Made by a program: the position numbers and the translations under genes. A DNA stretch of 63,520 nt, the filler included, from Parasitella parasitica NRRL 2501 (lineage: Eukaryota > Fungi > Mucoromycota): assembly GCA_025201805.1 (NCBI GenBank). It is 4 parts of 4 records of this genome, joined end to end, with 100 filler letters (N's around TTAATTAATTAA, not from the genome) between each part and the next. Parts side by side here need not be neighbours in the genome. Positions count along the whole stretch, not along the records: positions 1 to 19,346 come from MU619418.1; 3 more parts are not named here. One strand, 5' to 3'. Positions 1 to 16,288 of the stretch are shown one piece after another (within the stretch, counting starts at the first letter, position 1; each line of letters opens with the position of its first letter). Under the pieces are notes generated by a model. That model ran no database searches. It was given only the letters and a program-made list of their open reading frames with translations, and had not been told where the DNA came from.

Positions 1-975
1 CCCAGTTGCTAATGGTGTTGGTGCTGGTATTGGTACTGGTGCTGGTGCTGGTTTTGGTATTAGTGTTGGTGTTGGTGTTGGAAGAAGTTGGCTTTTCTTC
101 TTCTGATGAGATAGACTCATATTTTCTCTTTAAGGCAGCAGGAAGTAGTTTTCCATCTTCTAATATTTTCTTGCATTTCTCAACGTCAGGAACTTCTTCC
201 GATAATGTTGATATCGCCTTTGATAAAACACTTTCTGCATTTTCGCACACCAGCAATAGATCTTCTGTAGGCTTTGTACTTTCATTCAATTGTTCTTGGA
301 ACACCCGTGTGGCAATTGAATACAATAATTGAATTGTGGAGTCATTGCGGAAAGGGTTTACTAAAATCGAAGGGTGTTGACTGATAAAAAATGTGGATAA
401 AGCAACAAAAGGAGAAAGGGGTGATATCAAGCTTGTTTCTATCGAGCTGCCACTCACAAAGTAACACATCTCGGCCCAAGGTTGGCAAGAGTATTGACGA
501 AGAAAAGGGTGTTTTTTGTTTGGTACTGTTTTCTTGGAGACCTCATACTTCATCGAAGAGATAACAAATGTTTACACAATCGGTGGTGTTTTATTGTGTT
601 GGCGATAGATTGATATGGCATAAGACATGAGCCTCAAAACAAAGTCGTTGTCAACTGTATGCTGAATTTCCACCAAAATAGGGAGAAAGCTGCCGTTTTG
701 TGGGGAGTTGGGTAGATATAAAACGTCTGAAATAGTACGAGTTGGCCATTCTGTCGGCCAAGGTGAATAGTTACTTCTTCCTTCGGGTCCAAATATAGTC
801 TCAATGACAATGTCGATCACAGTGGAATTCAATAAAATTTGTTTCGACATCAAGTCTGTGCCTGGTCGTAATTTATGTGGCAGTTGTGAGGATAAAGTTC
901 TCTGGGGAGGTCCGTCATTTTGTGTTTTAGTTTCAGATTGATTGATACCATATGAAGTGAGAAAAACACGATACT
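1..975 (-). pseudogene. PD-(D/E)XK nuclease-like protein of a Mucorales repetitive family, one in-frame stop, 3' end beyond window
   Basis: The minus frame reads ...KLRPGTDLMSKQILL...SDVLYLP...PILVEIQHTVD...RLMSY...TPPIV*(TAA at 572-574)TFVISS...CQPWAEMCYFVS...PLSPFVAL...DSTIQLLYSIA... and stays open to base 1, ending in an (NT/ST)n microsatellite. The D...EIQ arrangement resembles a PD-(D/E)XK core. The start codon is not resolved. Confidence 0.55.
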
Positions 976-2990: not shown

Positions 2991-5900
2991 ATGCCAAAAA
3001 TCCGCATTATTTTGATACTTTTAATACTAGATTTAATTCAAAAATCAATACAACTGACATTTCGGGACACAACGATACCACAATGTGCTACTTCAGATTA
3101 CTACAACCCAAATGATCGTCCGAAAATTGCAGTTATATCACACGATTCCGCTATCAGCACATTTACTCAGGATCCAGAACAGGGAGCAAGAGATGCTGCC
3201 GCCATTCTCGATGTGCAAATAGATTGGAACAAGCATTTTATCAATTCAGCGTCGAAAATGATTGCTGATATTTATGATGCAGTGGACAATGTAGGTGTTT
3301 AGGTAGTTGCTGATTATCCCTCATACTGACGTGTATCTCAGGGAGTAGCCGGCATCATCGTCAGCATTCCCAACCAAGATGTCTTAGCTGCTGTCCGATA
3401 CGCCATGTCACATAATATACCTGTCATCGTATACAACGCAGGCCTTGAGTATGCCAAACAATTAGGACTCACCCGAGTCATGCTACATAACTATGAATCT
3501 GGACAGTTAGTAGGACAGGAACTATTAAAAAGAGGATACAGTCGACCACTTGTTTTGCAAATGGCAAACATACCAGATATTAGCTTCACCTCTCGATATG
3601 ATGGTGTATCAGAGGCCATTGGAATGGAACCTGAATTGATAGCTATATCTAACATCAATGATACGCAAAAATCAATTACTCAATTGGCAGCTTATTTGGA
3701 GGGACATGACACATTTGACTCTGTAGTTTCCTTGGGCGGATCTGTAAGATGCTAAACCTACGTTACACTGATGCGTTCTGATGTGATTTCCTTCAATAGT
3801 TAGGGACAGACATTGTCAGCAGCGCTGCATTGGATATACTGAATAGAAATTCTAGCAGAAAGCTAGGGGTTGCCTTCTTTGATACTGGCGGGCGTAACTT
3901 GAGTGCACTCTTCCAACAGCATCCCGATGTATTTGGAATATCGCAATTGCCTTACTATCAGGCTGCTTTACCCGTGTTTTTGATGTATCTTAGAATTACA
4001 ACAGGTTACAATGTCTATGGGAACCAAACAATCAATACAGGACCTATCTTGGTAACTAATGAGACTTTCTCCACTGTACTCGACAATGAGCAATCGACTT
4101 TGGTTCCTTTATCCGCTAAAGAAGCTCGTATTGGAGCCATTCTACCTAACGCTCAAGGCGACACCTACAACGGCGCAATCATGGCTGGAATCAAGGACTT
4201 GGCAACAAAATTGAACTGGGAAGTTCTGAATGTTGTTGAGGTATTATATTTTTGTTAAAACTTACAAAAACTGTAATGCCAATGCTAACTATATCTGAAC
4301 AACGTTTAGCAAGGACCACTTGGTAAAAAAAAAAAAAAAAGAAAAATCGAACAGTTACACAAGTTCAAGACAAACTAAACGGTTTTACATTACAGGCTCT
4401 ATAGCTCAAATGCAAGACGAAATCGATTATTATGTCAAAGAAAATATCGCAGGTATCATGATGCAGACAAGCAATCAAAGTTTGTTGAACTATAGCTTGC
4501 GGCAGAGCAATGTAAGTGGGATTCCTCTCGTTACATTGGGAACCTTTTTCGAAGATTTGAATCACACGACAACGCCGTATGTATCCCATCAAAAATGCAG
4601 AAAAAAAAAACTCCTTCCAGGTCTAGCTAAATGTATTGATATATGCTTAGAAAAATTCATAATATTGCTTTGAACACAGCCGATCTTTCTTTAAATGTCG
4701 CCAAGACAGTATTAGATAGCAACTTTACACGGCCTTTATGCATCGCAGAATTAACGCCTTGGAAGCAAAGTAGATACTGCAATCGCTTTTACAATGACTT
4801 TAGCTCAATGGCAGCCGAAAGAAATATTCAAGTGGAGTTATTGCCAGTCTCCAATGTCAATATTTCAACTGATAGTTCCATGGATCTTGAAGTAGCCATC
4901 ATCCTTGCTCGTCTAGCAGAAGCAGGGTCTAGCCCTGACGCCTATGTTACAATGTCTGAATACACATTTGAAACATTGAATGCGGTAAGCTCCTATATTT
5001 TCGATACAAAATATACATACTAACAATTTTTTTTTTTTTGTCTTTCAAGCGCATGCTAAAAGGCTATTTAAGCAATTCAACCAGTGTTTTCACCTCTGCA
5101 GATTTATTTGATCAAGTGCAAGCCTTGCTGGAAAAAAGAGTTAAAGCATCTTGGTTTCTGAACACATTTTCGATGGGATTTATGTCTGCTCTTGATATCC
5201 TTTTCTCAAAGACGCTGACAATTCAGCCGTGGAAATTAACCCAAATAGTATCACCCAAAGTTGCTTCAATTTGTACGCCAGGCACATTCTACTACGAGCT
5301 TTCCAAAAGCTTTTACTGTCTGGATGATGCTGGACACACTATAAAATCAATTCGCTGCGCGCAATGTCCCATCAACACATATTCTCCATTCGCAGATATG
5401 CTGGAATGCATACCGTGTCCTCGTGGAACGTACTCGTCAGCTGGATCCTATGAATGCACAACTTGTAGTCATGATGATTTTGAAAGCAGTTACAACAGTT
5501 ACTGTTTAGATTATTTTTCAGAAGAATCGGAACGAAAAAAGAAGTTATATATGTCGATCTTTATACCTATAGGCATAGTGCTGTTTGTTATTATTGTAGG
5601 CTGGCTGCTTTGGTTACTTCGTAAAAGAAACCGTTCTGTCAACGAGACCAGCGACGAAACATGGCTATTATCATATCAAAAGTTGACCTGCCCTTCGTTA
5701 CCTCACATGTCGTACTTGTCATCCTCACTGATGGAAGTTCCACTTATTGGCCCTAATCCTGAAAATACTTCGTCAAGTTACTCAATAGCAGATTATTCTA
5801 GTCCTTTGTCCCCATTTCGACAACAGCAACAACAAAAACAACAACACATGAATCAGCACGGACGTGTTTTTGACTCAAATCTTGCTGTCTCTGTTAGCGA

Positions 5901-7500
5901 TTATTCCAGGTCACCCAGGTAAGTACATACGTACAGATATTCTGGAAGGACATTTTTCAAATTAAAAAAAAAAAAAAAAAGCAGTGCAAGATCATCCGTA
6001 GACCATACATCAGAAAAAGAAAATTTCACTCTCGAATTTACCGTTGGATACCAGTAGGTATTGTGCAAGCCAGGACACGACGTCGAACTAACAAATCATC
6101 AAGTCGAAATTTGCCCGTATTTATCAAGCAGATTGGATTTATAAAACTCAAAGTGGATGACTCTATTCGGCAAGAAGTTGCATTAATGAAATGCGCCAGA
6201 CACCCAAAGCTTGTTGAGTTTTTAGGCATTTGTGCTGAGCCGCATGCTACGTTTATTGTGGAAGGTGAGCTGCGTTATTTAAACGAACCCTCAAAAATAC
6301 TAAATGCATTTGTTAGAATACTGCGCCAAAGGGTCGTTGGCTGACGTTTTGATTAATCCTGATATTGATCTTACATGGATATTCAGATTTTCGCTGATCA
6401 ACGATTTGCTAGACGGTTTGGACTTTCTCCAGCATTCTCGATTCAATTACCATGGAAACTTGACGTCCTTTTCGTGCTTAATAACAGGAAAATGGGAGTT
6501 GAAAATCACAGACTACGGTCTTCGCAAAATTCATCGCACCCAAATTGATCCCACTGTACTAGGTGCATTGCGCGAAAATTCACATGTAGACAGCAAGAAT
6601 TTCTTTTCAGATTCTGCGTGGATAATGACTAGTAGCATAAATCTATTATGGGTAGCTCCCGAATCGACAGCATGTACACCGCTCGGTTTATACATTACAT
6701 CACCTACAAAAAGTGCTGACATTTATAGGTATATTACTTTGGCCGACAAATGTCAATTATGCTAACGACTTTGTTAAAAACAGTGTTGGCATTATTATTA
6801 ATGAGATATTGACTCGTGAAAGGCCTTACCAAAAGCTCCTCGATCAAGGGATTACTTTTGAAAACATATTCCAAAGGGTCCGTGAAGAAAACCTTCGAGT
6901 AGCGATGAAAACTGCTACAGAGGATGAATATGCTGACAAGATCAACTTAATTATCAATGATTGCCTTCAATCTGACCCAAGTTCAAGACCTACATGTTTG
7001 GCTATCAAGGTATATACGCTATACTAGTCTCCATTAGCAATTGCCTTAATATTTCCTATAGAATCGAATGAGATCAATAGACCCATATTTGGCTGAATCA
7101 GACAACGTGGTTGATAATCTAGCTAATCTGGTAAAAGGGAGTTTTCTTAAAAAAGGCTTTTGTTTTACTTAAACTTTTTACGCTTGCTTTAGCTCGAGAA
7201 ATATGCTAATGATATGGAAAATCTTGTCCGTAAACGCACAGCAAACCTTCAGCAACGAACTATGGAATTAGAAGAAGAGCGTGCTCGCACACAAACTTTA
7301 TTGAAGGGTAATAAGGTGTAATCCAAATTGCTCTCTTGTAATGATGCTAACTCCTTTTTGTCGCAGATTTAAAGGCTGCCAAAGAAGTAGCTGAAGCTGC
7401 GGCCGCTGCTAAACAAACCTTCTTGGCGAATATGTCTCATGGTAAGGTCTTTTACAGGGCCTGTGGATGTGAACACTAATTGCCAGCACCTTTTTCTTTT

Positions 7501-7565
<65 letters not shown>

Positions 7566-9818
7566 CAGAAATACGTACGCCTATGAATGCTGTTATTGGT
7601 ATGTCCCGTATATTGATGGAAAGTGATTTGCCCACAGATTTATACGAATGTGCCGAAACGATTGAATCTTCAGGTAATCATACGCTTTACAACTAATATA
7701 TATTGCACGTCAATTTATTATTACCTATTAGGTAATCATCTAATGGCTATCATTGACGACATTTTGGACTATTCAAAGATTGAATCGGGAAAACTCTCTT
7801 TAGAAAATCGCCTCCTGGACATGGTAATTCAAATAGTTACATCGTTCAAAACAATCTCATGCTAATACGGCTGTCCTAAAATTTAGACATTTGTCATTGA
7901 AAGCGCAATTAAGCTCGTTGCCCCCAATTATTTGGATAAGGGTCTGACGCTATGGTATGAAATCGATTCCAACGTCCCAGTTCGAATATACGGTGATTTA
8001 GTTCGTATTCGCCAAGTCATCTTGAACTTGTTATCAAATGCGCTCAAGTTTACAAAGACGGGTTATGTGCATGTTCATGTGCAGATATGTCCAAATAGTA
8101 AGCTGCATATCACAAAACCGGCTTCGGATCATGCACCAGGCAACAATGATGAGGAGGACTACAAAAAAATATCTGAGACGGCACCTTTTATCACTGAAGA
8201 ATGCGAGTTGCCACAAGATGTAGTTCCATTCTTGGTATCTGTTACCGACACCGGTATTGGTATTCCAAAGAGCAAATCAAGCAAGCTTTTTCAGTCGTTT
8301 TCTCAAGTTGACGCATCCACTACTCGTAATTTTGGCGGCACTGGTTTAGGCTTAGCTATCAGCAGACAGCTCTGTCGTATGATGGGCGGCGATATGGTGA
8401 GTGTCCCATTTCCTTTTCTACATACATATACTTACTTTTTTTTTTTATAATAGTGGGTTGAATCCAAACTAGGTAAAGGATCGACCTTCAACTTTCAAAT
8501 CCTGCTACAAAAACAAGCAGACAGTCCTACCTATGGAGACCAAAACCGTTTAAAAGAGATCTCAAGCATTTATACCAATCCAGTCGTTATCGCTGAAAAT
8601 GAGCCTTGCAAAACTAGCTGGAAGAGCATTCTTTCGAGCTTCTGTATCACTGGAACCAAAGCAATGAGCTACAGAGAATCACTCGTGTGCTTTAAGGAAT
8701 TGGATACGTTGCATTCCAAGCCCTCTGTTCTTATTATTGACGAGGATCTTAATATAGTCGACGGAATGGGCTCCACTTTGCCTGCTTCCAGCGAGGCAGT
8801 TCTTGATGATCTTCGAACAAAGTTTCCATTCTTAACCAACATACCAACATTGTGCATCAATGATTTACGACTTCGAAAGTCAACCAAGCTAGCAAATCCT
8901 GCTTCGACTGTCGGGCAGCAAGTCAGTGCTTCACCTGCATTGGAAGAAAAATCATCCACTCCTCAAGATGAATCAAGCAACCCCTTTGATTTTGCTAGTG
9001 ATTCGTTTTACAGCGTCTGCAAACCCTTCAAAAATTCAAAACTTGTATCTGCCCTCCATCGTTTGGCTATCAAGGAGCCTGTTTCTCCTGCAGATGCATT
9101 TTTGACTCGAACTCGATTGCAAGCACCAAATCCAGCAATCCCTTCTTCTTTTGCAAACGATGAGTCTCCTCAGCATCTTGGTCATCGATCAAATAGCTTC
9201 TCAAGCACATCATCTGGTCGCCCACTCGCTGATTTCTTGGCAGGTGTAAAATCCCTATTAGTAGATGATAACCCGATTAATCAAAAGGTGCTATCTCGTA
9301 TGTTGACACAGATGGGTTTGCACCCTCAGATTGCTCAGAACGGACGAGAAGCTTGTAACATGGTCGCCAGTGCAAAGGATAGCGGTGAGCCCGTCGAGCT
9401 CATTTTTATGGATATTTGGATGCCCGAGATGAATGGTCTGGAAGCTTCTGAAAAAATTCGTCAAGGGCTATCTTCTTCTGGTGTGAACCCTTATATCATT
9501 GCAATGACGGCTTGTGTTATGCCTGGAGATCGTGAAAAGTGTATTGATTCAGGCATGAACGGGTATGTGAGTAAGCCTGTTCGTAAAGAAGAACTCGAAG
9601 CTGCGCTTCATACATATACCCAGATCCATATGACCAGTGAATTGACGTCCGTGGACAAAGGGCAAGGCCTCAGCGGCTCGTCTGCTCCTTCAACTCCCCC
9701 AGCAGACACTCATCAAGCCTTTTCTTCAAATACTGTCATAAACAGAAGTGGACGTTGTGAAAACTTTGTCCTTAATGTACCCACTGTTACCATTACTCCC
9801 GAAGATCAGTCTTCTTGA
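2991..9818 (+). CDS. Single-pass receptor hybrid histidine kinase: signal peptide + periplasmic sugar-binding-like domains + Cys-rich repeat + TM + receptor-guanylyl-cyclase-type pseudokinase + coiled coil + HisKA + HATPase + pseudo-REC + REC (~1912 aa, 18 exons)
   Basis: Hand-spliced exons, all GT-AG and in frame: 2991-3290, 3342-3743, 3800-4240, 4310-4322, 4396-4576, 4651-4984, 5050-5918, 5985-6053, 6104-6264, 6317-6728, 6784-7009, 7062-7130, 7193-7307, 7367-7441, 7569-7673, 7732-7823, 7887-8396, 8454-9818. Motifs: GVAGIIVSIP..IPVIVYN; CPINTYS..CPRGTYS; TM IFIPIGIVLFVIIVGWLLWLL; EYCAKGSL..HGNL..KITDYGL..WVAPE; H-box FLANMSHEIRTPMNAVIG; N-box NLLSNALKFT; DTGIGI; GGTGLGL; REC LLVDDN..FMDIWMP..MTA..KP. 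Confidence 0.9.
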
Positions 9819-12101: not shown

Positions 12102-13087
12102 TTAGGCTCGATTATTCAATTCTGTCAAGATGACGACTTCCTGGTGCTGCTTGATTTCAAGTCTAACTGGCTTATCGCCATTGACTCTTTGCAAAGCCTT
12201 TTCGTTCAATTGAAGTTCTGCGGGATGTGTAGTAACTATAGTAGAAATAAAGTTAGCAGTGGCCTCATTTGACGTTGCAACATATTACCCCAATGAATCA
12301 CCATACAGATGATAGTGAGCGATAATGCAGACACGCTGGAGGCAACCAACCCTCTCTCGTGCCCGTTCAAGCAAATCATTATGATAAAGTTTGCGGCGGA
12401 AGTGATCAGAGCAGTAATAGCAGCAATGGCATTGCGCTTCGCCATCATGTGTAAAGAGGACGATTGGTGAGCTGTCTGTTGCGCTGTATTGGGAAAGCAG
12501 TAGAATTTGATGAAAATGGAAATGTAAAGAAGAGATATAAAGACGTCGTAACAGAGAGCGACGGCTGACGCGGGCAGGTCAAAGCCAACTATGCAATGGA
12601 AAGGATATTCGTTTGCTACTATATTGACACGAAACATGATTTGGAGTAAAATGATGGCAATGTGAGGCAGCATTAGACCCAAGTTGATCAAATACAGGGG
12701 CGACCTAAAACGGGTGCTCTTTGGAACAGAGATAATATGGATCTATGGTAGCAGTAATTAATACAAGCAGTGCTTGGTTGGGATGGCGAGATTTACCTTT
12801 TCAATAAAGTATAGATAGAGGACAGCTTTGGCGGCTGTGTAGATTAAGGTACAGTTGAAATTGGTCATTACGCAAGAGATAAAATTGCCATTATTTGTGC
12901 TGGTGAGCATGCAGGCAATAAGATTGAATGCCCAACTAAGGCCATACAAGATCAGCAGCAAGCCGCGGACGTAGTGGATGGGGCCGTCTATACTGGCAAT
13001 CTTTCGGCCAAATATTAACGATACAATAGTAATGCAAGTGACGCTGTTGACTTCTGCGAGAATTTCCCACTGATCTGGTGAGTACAT
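12102..13087 (-). CDS. Seven-transmembrane GPCR-like membrane protein (3 exons)
   Basis: Exons 13087-12797, 12742-12289 and 12235-12102 splice in frame. There are seven hydrophobic segments, a Cys at the start of TM3 (ISCVMTN) and in ECL2 (FHCIVG), and a short polar C-tail. Confidence 0.7.
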
Positions 13088-13736: not shown

Positions 13737-16288
13737 ATGGAAGAAGACGAAGAGCGCGAAGGAACCAGAGCATACATCCTAAATTTATGTTCTGCTATTG
13801 GTGGCCTCGAAGAAATCAAGCAAGATGATGGAACCGTTGGTCAGATCTACTGTGCTGGTGATGAAGCCTTAGGTACAGCATGTGCAAGCCTTTTGCAAAC
13901 CTTCAATAAACTAACTCTTGTACAATAGCTTGTTTGAGAGACTTGAAGAAAGCAATTCGTATTGATAGTCAAAATAATGAGAAAACTGTATTGAACACTC
14001 TAGTCGAGTTTAATGTTGTAAAGACGGATATTGTACCTTTGCTATTATCTTATCGAAATCAACGTACAGAAGTTGCAGATCGATTCATTCTTGCCTGTGG
14101 TAAATACGTTTTTTCTCAGGTAAAGCCGCCTTTAGTTTAATTAGACGTTTACATAGTCGAATTGTTGGTACCCATGACATGGCCACTTGAACAAAAAACT
14201 CTAGATGATGAGGACGAGGAGGGTGAGCCTGAGAATCCCAACGTAATGCAATGCTACCGAAAATACAAGTTGGATCTTTTGACACCAGGTGTATTTGAGA
14301 CTATCCTAACCATGATTATCAAAGCACTTCGAAAGCCCCATAGGTAAAAAGAGAGGTTCTCTTGCGATGTAGACACATTAACTTTTTATTTTTGTGGTAG
14401 AGAGAGGTCCACTGTGGATCACACCAGTATTCGACTGGTGCTTTATCTTTTGCGTAATTTGGCTACCATTCCTGATTTAAATATGCCTGAATTCGGTACT
14501 GAAGATCAGATCAGAATGTCACATATGCAGGAATTATTGCTGATACGATATTACGAATCTGATATCATGGAATTTCTGCTCACAATTGCGTCCAACAGCG
14601 AAAGACAAGGAGGTACATCAGAGTGGAACGTATTAGTTTTGGAAACTATATACAATCTTCTCAAACATGTTGATCCAAGAGACGTATTTTCATACACACC
14701 TTCTGAGGATGCAGTAAGTCAAAAATGCTGGAACTAAACCAAGTAGCATACAACTTGAATATTATTTGTAGAAACAAGGAGAGCTCCAAGATTTGTCAGC
14801 TAAATTATCAAACTTGCTATCAAAGGAAACATCTAACAAACGACTCAAGACAGGATATACTCCATCGAGACACAATAGATTTGGTGGTACTTATGTACTG
14901 GATTGGGATGGGAAAAAAAGAGTATCACATAAACAAGTGGCAGGCTTTGCAGATTCTGCGTTTGTTGTTGAGGGAGACAAAAGGACAAGCAGGATAGGAA
15001 AAAAACGCAAATTGGAGGATACACTTATACCAAAAAAAGTTTACCGAAACAGAAAAACACTCAAATATCTCAAAACAATCTCCCAGTCATTCCTTACATC
15101 CTGCTTCAATGGTAAAAAGAAAGATTTTTCAACTATGTTTACTCGCCACGACTTATTTGGTTCTAGCATTCTTTGACTGTATTTTAAAGGATATGCAACG
15201 TGAGGACGACAAAATTGTACCGAAAGATTACCCTCGCTACTACTTTACTATGAAATGGTTCCTGGAATATCATAACTACGAACATAAGGCCGCGCACAAA
15301 AGCAAAGTGGACGAATTTTATATACCGAATGGTGATTTACTGCAAGATATTGAAAATAATGATTTCGACTACTCTTTAGTTGCCAGTGCTTTGAACCTAA
15401 AGACTGTTTTGTTTTGTTTGCGACACATGCGAATAAGATTAGATGATAAAGAGTGGTTTGACGTACAAATGGCAGTGGATTGTTTTCGTCAAATGTTGGT
15501 GACGCTGGGAGCCATGGCTAAATCAGACATCGAGGAACACCGCCAAGTGGCAGAACACATCCAACAGAACTTGTATTATGAGCAGGCATCGTTCGATCTA
15601 TTCCTTGATATATTAAAGTGCTATAGAAATCAGTCCTATGGCTACTTGAAAGCTGTAATTATGTTGACCCATGTGCTGCTGAAATCTTTAGATCACTATC
15701 AAAAAGGGAAAAAGATGATGTTTGTTCGCAAAAAGAAAACCCAAAAGAAAAAGAAACCAGCAAAAGTGGGAGAGGAACAGCAAGAAGAAGGCTTGGCAGT
15801 GATTACAGCTATTGACTCGGAAGAAGAGAGCGATCCTCAAATTGATAAACACAAAGAGCAAGAATACAGAGATATCCAATTCAAATTCTCGTCATATGAG
15901 CAGAAATATGTTTCCTGGGACGTGGTTTATGCTTATACTTCTTTGCTGGAACTTTATCAACACTTGCAGCCAGAGTATCTGACCTGTATTTCGAATATGT
16001 TTCATAGGCTGGCGGTTAAGAGAAAGGCAGAGTATTTATTCTGGAAGGTAATAAGAAACTGATTACAGCGCAGAGACAAGGTTCTAATCATCTAAGATGC
16101 AGCTCCCTGTAATGGAGTTATTTAATCGTATTTTACAAGACACAAAAAAGTTTCCACAATCTACGGCTTTTGCAGAACTGGAGCAATTTATTCGGTACTC
16201 TACTCGCCAGTTCTTCATAGCAGCCGCTGAGTATCCGCTCTTGTACATAGAAGCGCTCAATCCAAGCATAAAATCCGATTATAAATAG
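13737..16288 (+). CDS. TOF1: Timeless/Tof1/Swi1 replication fork protection complex subunit (~7 exons, ~735 aa, possibly C-terminally short)
   Basis: Timeless-family motifs: LCSAIGG, DEALACLRDLKK, DIVPLL, ELLVPMTWP, SIRLVLYLLRNL, PSRHNRFGGTY, VAEHIQQNLYYE, MFHRLAV. Confidence 0.88.

Follow-up and report, generated by a model that had tools for sequence, protein, structure and literature searches.

Most fungal histidine kinases are cytoplasmic, and to our knowledge a ligand has been assigned to only a few of them. Group XVI of the fungal hybrid histidine kinases (also MS-HKII) is catalogued as a transmembrane group that carries an S/T kinase domain (PMC8510515). The accessible portions of the texts on this group give neither a function nor a ligand for it, and in the portions seen we found no paper noting a cyclase-receptor origin or a sugar-binding ectodomain; published figures may already label a PBP. 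Group X kinases also join an S/T-kinase-related domain to a hybrid histidine kinase, and they have a GAF domain (PMC6324907). Animal receptor guanylyl cyclases become constitutive when the kinase-homology domain (KHD) is deleted, and their signal is passed on by the linker (PMC12493192, PMC1435932); a signalling helix after a kinase domain has been stated to occur only in these receptors (PMC1592074).

Here we describe a group XVI gene in a window from Parasitella parasitica NRRL 2501 (the whole stretch of DNA analysed, 63,520 nucleotides with filler). Its product resembles animal receptors such as NPR1/GC-A and GUCY2C in being single-pass, in the clade of its KHD, and in its linker and signalling helix up to the LL before the output domain. 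It differs from them in its output, which is HisKA, HATPase and receivers instead of a class III cyclase, in having two RbsB-like folds instead of ANF_receptor, in a helix longer by 7 residues and in a broken Mg-binding pair.

A single spliced gene of group XVI

The receptor histidine kinase is a real, spliced, single gene. A frame check gave 18 exons with GT-AG introns and an uninterrupted reading frame of 1912 codons followed by a stop; one of the exons is a micro-exon of 13 nt (Table 1). A spliced contig of 5371 nt from run X1 (presumed to be RNA; one assembled contig from one study) directly displays the splice junctions of introns 1-5 and 7-13, holds the pieces flanking intron 6 on both sides in one record, and extends from 7441 into exon 15. 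Record arithmetic places the intron-6 acceptor at 5981 instead of 5984, which gives 1913 aa, and, provided that introns 15-17 are spliced as in the model, would extend the contig to about 9439; the junctions followed in the RNA lie upstream of these three introns, which rest on reading phase and colinear homologues. The original prediction of one gene of about 1912 aa, with possible breaks near 5920 and at 7010-7370, stands as a single gene, the contig being in frame across both suspected breaks (5918 and 7010-7370). A paralogue elsewhere in the genome and the L001 locus are colinear with the gene. We found more than ten full-length single-protein homologues, and several of the public models are broken up or cut short (P0010, P0011, P0012 and P0189).

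The S/T-kinase-like domain and transmembrane region match the definition of group XVI. The H-box region (exons 14-16) is near-identical to that of the founders MeHHK11 and MeHHK12 of Mortierella elongata, which were compared with the family by eye, outside the tree; the motif also occurs in homologues, and within the catalogue its exact form is confined to these two founders. As far as the accessible part of the source goes (PMC5285503), the founders further share the cyclase-type linker, kinase-like domain, single transmembrane helix, Cys stalk and long ectodomain, and we see no real difference from the Parasitella gene, which is a Mucorales member of the group. The suspicion that the architecture might already be listed was thus correct. 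Surveyed across Mucoromycota as had been proposed, the layout proved common to Radiomyces, Phascolomyces, Apophysomyces, Parasitella, Mucor, Zychaea, Podila and Actinomortierella, and the named homologues all belong to Mucorales or Mortierellales. This lineage includes agents of mucormycosis, plant associates and mycoparasites. The layout had also been judged unlike group X, and that identity was rejected: no scan of the Parasitella protein or of its homologues returned a GAF domain, and the group X MeHHK proteins have another H-box and layout. Group XV (MS-HKI) was rejected as well, MeHHK10 having a different H-box and no such N-terminus.

Table 1. Features of the receptor histidine kinase gene, in window positions
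Feature	Position	Strand	Basis or remark
Whole CDS	2991..9818	+	Frame check, spliced contig, record arithmetic
Exons 1-6	2991-3290, 3342-3743, 3800-4240, 4310-4322, 4396-4576, 4651-4984	+	
Exons 7-12	5050-5918, 5982(or 5985)-6053, 6104-6264, 6317-6728, 6784-7009, 7062-7130	+	
Exons 13-18	7193-7307, 7367-7441, 7569-7673, 7732-7823, 7887-8396, 8454-9818	+	
Putative signal peptide, end approximate	2991..3062	+	Hydropathy peak 1.93 at residue 6; closest orthologue P0172 starts alike
PBP1, class I sugar-binding-protein fold	3123..4080	+	Peripla_BP_4 5e-10; exon 2 vs 4RU1 4.8e-7
PBP2, second, degenerate sugar-binding fold	4120..5262, limits approximate	+	Includes micro-exon 4310-4322
Cys-rich stalk, Ephrin_rec_like / NCD3G-like	5272..5500	+	Domain scan
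Transmembrane helix, single	5551..5619	+	Hydropathy 2.77; homologues also have one
KHD (pseudokinase), receptor-guanylyl-cyclase type	6040..7009	+	NPR1 1.5e-17, GC-C 2.5e-8, LIMK1 8e-5; trees; motifs
Cyclase-receptor linker and signalling helix	7062..7425	+	HNOBA match, weak; motif comparison
HisKA	7402..7790	+	Domain scan; phospho-His codon 7438-7440
HATPase_c with N, G1, F, G2 boxes	7887..8510	+	1.2e-21
Degenerate receiver	8580..9065	+	Profile A5, weak matches
Canonical receiver	9252..9615	+	2.9e-23; acceptor Asp codon 9411-9413, Lys 9573-9575

Tandem sugar-binding folds in the ectodomain

The domain order originally proposed was verified exon by exon, except that the ectodomain consists of two PBP folds and not one, and that a degenerate receiver had been missed. 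Both folds are RbsB-like bacterial sugar-binding-protein folds, not NPR-type: every match in the family members scanned was to Peripla_BP_4/1 and sugar-binding folds, and none was to ANF_receptor (LIVBP-type). The PBP1 family profile matched 4RU1 at 2.6e-41, with the next match at 4e-14. In a structure prediction that took a Mucor bainieri homologue in place of the Parasitella protein, 4RU1 again ranked first (Z 28.6, rmsd 2.6 over 278 residues, at an identity of only about 24%), followed by glucose, galactose and ribose binders (Z 24-26). The PBP2 profile (A3) matched 3ROT at 1.6e-9 and 4RU1 at 2.4e-8, and residues 319-611 of the same model align to PBP-I folds with Z about 24; the pocket residues of PBP2 have been lost. 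The protein of 4RU1, ACEI_1806, is described as a verified myo-inositol transporter (PMC10747050). The best NCBIfam match of PBP1 is the rhizopine-binding protein NF052284, with scores far below the 420-bit cut-off (exon 2 reaches 42.6 bits and the PBP1 of a homologue at most 105.5). Rhizopine is an inositol derivative.

The pocket positions of PBP1, taken from the alignment and known RbsB-type contacts rather than from 4RU1 coordinates, carry the equivalent H, F, N, R, D and Q in the Parasitella protein and most homologues. This polar sugar-contact set is conserved from Mucorales to Mortierellales, amid columns that average 40% identity. Near the pocket, the Parasitella protein and its orthologue have three changes (W to T, Q to L and D to H) at positions where the paralogue clade mostly retains W, Q and D, and one Mortierellales clade has lost N, Q and Q. 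Ligands may therefore differ between copies. PBP1 shares its fold, and by alignment may share most pocket residues, with the bacterial CUT2 binders ACEI_1806 and NF052284; those proteins, however, serve an ABC transporter, whereas here the fold is tandemly duplicated, has many N-glycosylation sequons and forms part of a eukaryotic receptor. Two scans of bacterial genomes returned no relatives of PBP1.

Pseudokinase, signalling helix and phosphorelay domains

The KHD carries the motifs VFIK, HGNLTSFS (without the catalytic Asp or the Asn) and DYG. In a tree with two TKL-type outgroups and ten fungal kinases, and with cyclase rows chosen by similarity to the query, it clusters with animal receptor guanylyl cyclase KHDs (support 100/99), as the original prediction expected; grouping with fungal kinases, and with it an ordinary fungal kinase origin, was rejected (AU p=0.0007). 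Homologues from Mucorales and Mortierellales group together in a single clade (99/97). The family nests within the animal cyclases with unstarred support only, and cyclase monophyly is not rejected (AU test, p=0.14), so we do not claim transfer from animals.

The proposed NPR chassis holds for the pseudokinase and signalling helix and fails for the ectodomain. NPR-style allostery by ATP is doubtful, judging by the residues of the KHD, which lacks part of the Mg-ATP set. Both Mg-binding residues (catalytic-loop Asn and DFG Asp) are kept in 0/30 family rows, as against 53/59 cyclase rows: Mucorales have lost the Asn and Mortierellales the Asp. The VAIK Ala is often replaced by Phe in the family; the Parasitella KHD retains the beta-3 Lys, the alpha-C Glu and the DYG Asp.

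The signalling helix has a doubled RT signature with a 7-residue insert, which makes it one heptad longer than the cyclase type, and it merges into the HisKA helix; its exon alone had no match in the PDB. No class III cyclase domain lies in the gene, and Guanylate_cyc is matched twice in the genome, both times on other contigs. The phosphorelay transmitter is intact, as predicted from its H, N and G boxes and acceptor Asp, the hybrid kinase set being complete (H, N, G1, F and G2 boxes; receiver DD, D, T and K). Profile A5 of the degenerate receiver matches almost nothing but receiver domains, each weakly (best E 0.012). Response_reg was matched in this region by 4/13 members, and a single-sequence fold of exon 18 there had pLDDT 34. 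The genome holds one Hpt gene, with its His motif present.

Candidate ligand and proposed signal path

The 4RU1 ranking, the rhizopine match and the kept pocket residues lead us to favour, with a probability of roughly 0.55, a reading in which the group XVI kinase is a dimeric receptor at the cell surface that crosses the membrane once and binds a small polyhydroxy solute, with myo-inositol, or a cyclitol or monosaccharide related to it, as the likeliest ligand. PBP1 would close on the solute, and PBP2 and the Cys-rich stalk would couple its movement to the membrane helix. The catalytically dead KHD would serve, like its counterpart in receptor guanylyl cyclases, as a conformational clamp, though one that probably needs no Mg-ATP, and the signalling helix would transmit a twist to the HisKA dimer, switching kinase or phosphatase activity. 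Phosphate would pass from His (7438) to Asp (9411) and then to the only Hpt, which is Ypd1-like and would hand it to response regulators.

The same receptor and relay might instead answer to something other than a free sugar or cyclitol, such as a cell-wall fragment, a partner or host signal, or a peptide held between two PBP folds or subunits. Eukaryotic receptors have co-opted PBP folds, and natriuretic peptides bind between NPR ectodomains. The lost PBP2 pocket and the variation of pocket-near PBP1 residues among paralogues would fit such a ligand, but the conserved sugar-contact set of PBP1 argues against it, and we consider it possible though rather unlikely. That same pocket would be left unexplained if the protein sensed osmotic, turgor or wall stress without a ligand, in place of the absent Sln1 (group VI) membrane kinase. 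Group VI kinases are confined to Ascomycota (PMC13452588, PMC6324907) and Sln1 also uses a signalling helix (PMC1592074), yet group III osmosensors exist in these fungi (PMC5285503), and we regard this reading as improbable.

Slightly less probable still is a receptor that is NPR-like throughout and allosterically controlled by ATP at its KHD: the retained Lys, Glu and Asp and the cyclase-receptor type of linker speak for it, the broken Mg-binding pair, the frequent Phe in VAIK and the non-ANF ectodomain against it. A mis-joining of two adjacent genes, a sensor half and a kinase half, could be read from the split or truncated public models and from the reliance on a single contig, but it is largely refuted by in-frame splicing over both suspected breaks, by the full-length homologues and by the colinear paralogue and L001 locus; we deem it extremely improbable.

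For the solute receptor, the parts of the protein supply the first testable ligand guess for group XVI, inositol or a similar sugar, and a candidate ligand class with a defined pocket makes this orphan group directly testable. The receptor guanylyl cyclase pseudokinase and signalling helix, described as animal-only (PMC1592074), are here wired to a histidine kinase, which bears on the origin of such receptors and offers a natural test of whether the transducer works apart from its output domain. Tentatively, and short of an even chance, we extend the solute-receptor reading to group XVI as a whole: its members would sense extracellular inositol or sugar and drive a His-Asp relay through the pseudokinase and signalling helix of animal cyclase receptors. 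The transducer-kinase cassette would exist outside animals with at least two bacterial binding-protein ectodomain types, sugar-type in Mucoromycota and Bmp-like in an AT-rich eukaryote.

In LuxP/LuxQ, TorT/TorS and XylFII/LytS, a class I binding protein gates a bacterial histidine kinase; unlike the Parasitella receptor, those pairs keep the binding protein on a chain of its own and have no intervening pseudokinase. The XylFII-LytSN complex was present among the fold matches of the homologue model.

Gene structure, expression and family

Frame checking of the receptor gene gave 18 exons, including a 13-nt micro-exon, which join across 17 GT-AG introns into a single open frame running from 2991 to a stop codon at 9816-9818. 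X1, from one study and presumed to be RNA, is the sole sequencing run containing the stretch and yields a single 5371-nt contig. Direct inspection of this contig showed introns 1-5 and 7-13 joined as spliced and the letters of the micro-exon present. Both flanks of intron 6 are represented within the same record, and the contig extends from 7441 into exon 15. The ectodomain and the phospho-His exon therefore lie on one contig, which bridges both points (near 5920 and at 7010-7370) at which the original prediction had allowed for a break between genes; introns 15-17 are predicted from reading phase and colinear homologues. Intron 6 has a tandem acceptor (AAG CAG, 5980-5984), and arithmetic on the contig record favours the upstream AG at 5981, giving 1913 aa. 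The gene was searched exon by exon, and full-length public homologues stood in for the joined protein in searches, folds and trees.

Binding-protein, kinase, HisKA, HATPase and receiver domains sit together on a single chain in homologues from Radiomyces, Phascolomyces, Apophysomyces, Parasitella, Mucor, Zychaea, Podila and Actinomortierella; the Linnemannia homologue is partial, and several public models are split. One public model is auto-named guanylate cyclase and another RGC protein kinase, so annotation pipelines have already picked up the resemblance. The same genome carries a complete paralogue (G000:C25, L007, about 68700-75700), with which a 445-aa, apparently truncated public model (P0189) agrees except for intron gaps.

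The suspicion that this architecture was already listed proved correct. The H-box region and layout are the same as in MeHHK11 and MeHHK12 (MS-HKII, supplement of PMC5285503), and MS-HKII is group XVI (PMC6324907), which PMC8510515 places with the groups that have an S/T kinase domain and also with those that have transmembrane regions. The gene is a real, expressed member of an already catalogued group. The paper texts searched make no mention of function, ligand, binding-protein folds or cyclase-receptor kinship for group XVI. What is new here is the anatomy: a transducer of cyclase-receptor type, the precise point at which it joins the histidine kinase, an ectodomain of two tandem sugar-binding folds, and a hypothesis for the ligand.

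The kinase-homology domain and its junction

The hits of exon 10 are stronger to cyclase receptors (NPR1 1.5e-17, GC-C 2.5e-8) than to the best ordinary kinase (8e-5). Among 1.84 billion representatives searched, matches beyond the gene's own family were mostly cyclase receptors, all the named ones being animal. In a tree of the kinase-homology domain (KHD) only, the family forms one clade (support 100/97) and groups with the cyclase KHDs (100/99), separate from TKL-type and fungal kinases; grouping with fungal kinases was rejected (p=0.0007). The predicted kinship with receptor guanylyl cyclases rather than ordinary fungal kinases is thus borne out. Cyclase monophyly was not rejected (p=0.14), so the tree does not separate inheritance from transfer.

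In the KHD the catalytic Asp is absent, the catalytic-loop Asn is lost in Mucorales and the DFG Asp in Mortierellales; both of the latter residues are kept in 0 of 30 family rows, whereas 53 of 59 cyclases keep them. GC-C shows ATP allostery (PMC12493192), which these losses make doubtful here.

The linker retains the EKYAN motif, RT signature and terminal LL of cyclase receptors. In 23 of 23 aligned Mucoromycota rows a second RT lies in an insert of 7 residues, and the linker then passes directly into the kinase helix and H-box. PMC1592074 describes the signalling helix as a switch common to kinases and cyclases, with animal cyclase receptors as the only proteins in which it follows a kinase domain. 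The simplest account of the junction would be a fusion inside this shared helix.

The same KHD fused to HisKA (P0143) is found in transcript fragments (24-28% GC) from JGI sample 3300018087; these KHD sequences are the sister group to the Mucoromycota clade. Loci of this type (L029, L030, L036) belong to an AT-rich eukaryote and lack the 7-residue insert at the same place. Close relatives in the sample have a signal-like start and one membrane segment, and an ectodomain (P0202) scored as Bmp-like (0.88) serves as a lead only; no fragment from the sample covers the ectodomain through HisKA. Separately, an intron-poor, gene-dense metagenome contig carries an ANF_receptor, kinase and cyclase gene (L031:7398-10726), possibly a non-animal receptor guanylyl cyclase.

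Ectodomain and candidate ligand

The AlphaFold model of the Mucor bainieri homologue (pLDDT 84.7) has two class I binding-protein folds, PBP1 and PBP2, and a Cys-rich stalk. Its top structural matches are all sugar-binding or LacI-type, the first being 4RU1, the structure of ACEI_1806 (Z 28.6, rmsd 2.6, 278 residues), and no family member has an ANF_receptor match. The NPR-type ectodomain of the original prediction thus gives way to two sugar-binding folds. The PBP1 profile matches 4RU1 at 2.6e-41 and its next hit at 4e-14; the 4RU1 protein has been termed a verified myo-inositol transporter (PMC10747050). Rhizopine-binding protein is the best NCBIfam match, at a score far under the family cut-off.

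By alignment, PBP1 keeps H, F, N, R, D and Q, the inferred equivalents of RbsB-type sugar contacts. Three pocket-near positions are changed in this gene and its orthologue, and the paralogue has the more usual version of the pocket motifs. The second fold, PBP2, is a degenerate member of the same subfamily. The odds lean slightly towards a sugar or cyclitol as ligand, with inositol the best single guess. All PBP1 look-alikes in the atlas are bacterial clusters, and a bacterial origin is plausible; scans of bacterial genomes found no donor.

Output domains and neighbouring features

The transmitter boxes and receiver residues are all intact, in keeping with the complete phosphorelay transmitter predicted, and weak but consistent evidence points to a degenerate receiver between the HATPase and the true receiver. 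A single Ypd1-like Hpt gene with its His motif was found in the genome (L008:1280-1791). In the mechanism we propose, PBP1 would close upon solute, PBP2 and the stalk would move the membrane helices of a dimer, the pseudokinase would release its clamp, the signalling helix would reset HisKA, and the phosphoryl group would pass from His to Asp to Hpt.

Features neighbouring the receptor gene
Feature	Position	Strand	Remarks
IS630/Tc1-mariner-type DDE_3 transposase	1300-2700 (ORF 1663-2532)	+	immediately upstream of receptor gene; 5' part seemingly interrupted
Transposase_31 (YhgA-like) fragment	572-853	-	E 4e-6
Gene for hydrophobic, probably multi-pass membrane protein, two ORFs	12236-13087	-	no convincing Pfam match
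Timeless/Tof1 orthologue	13737-16288	+
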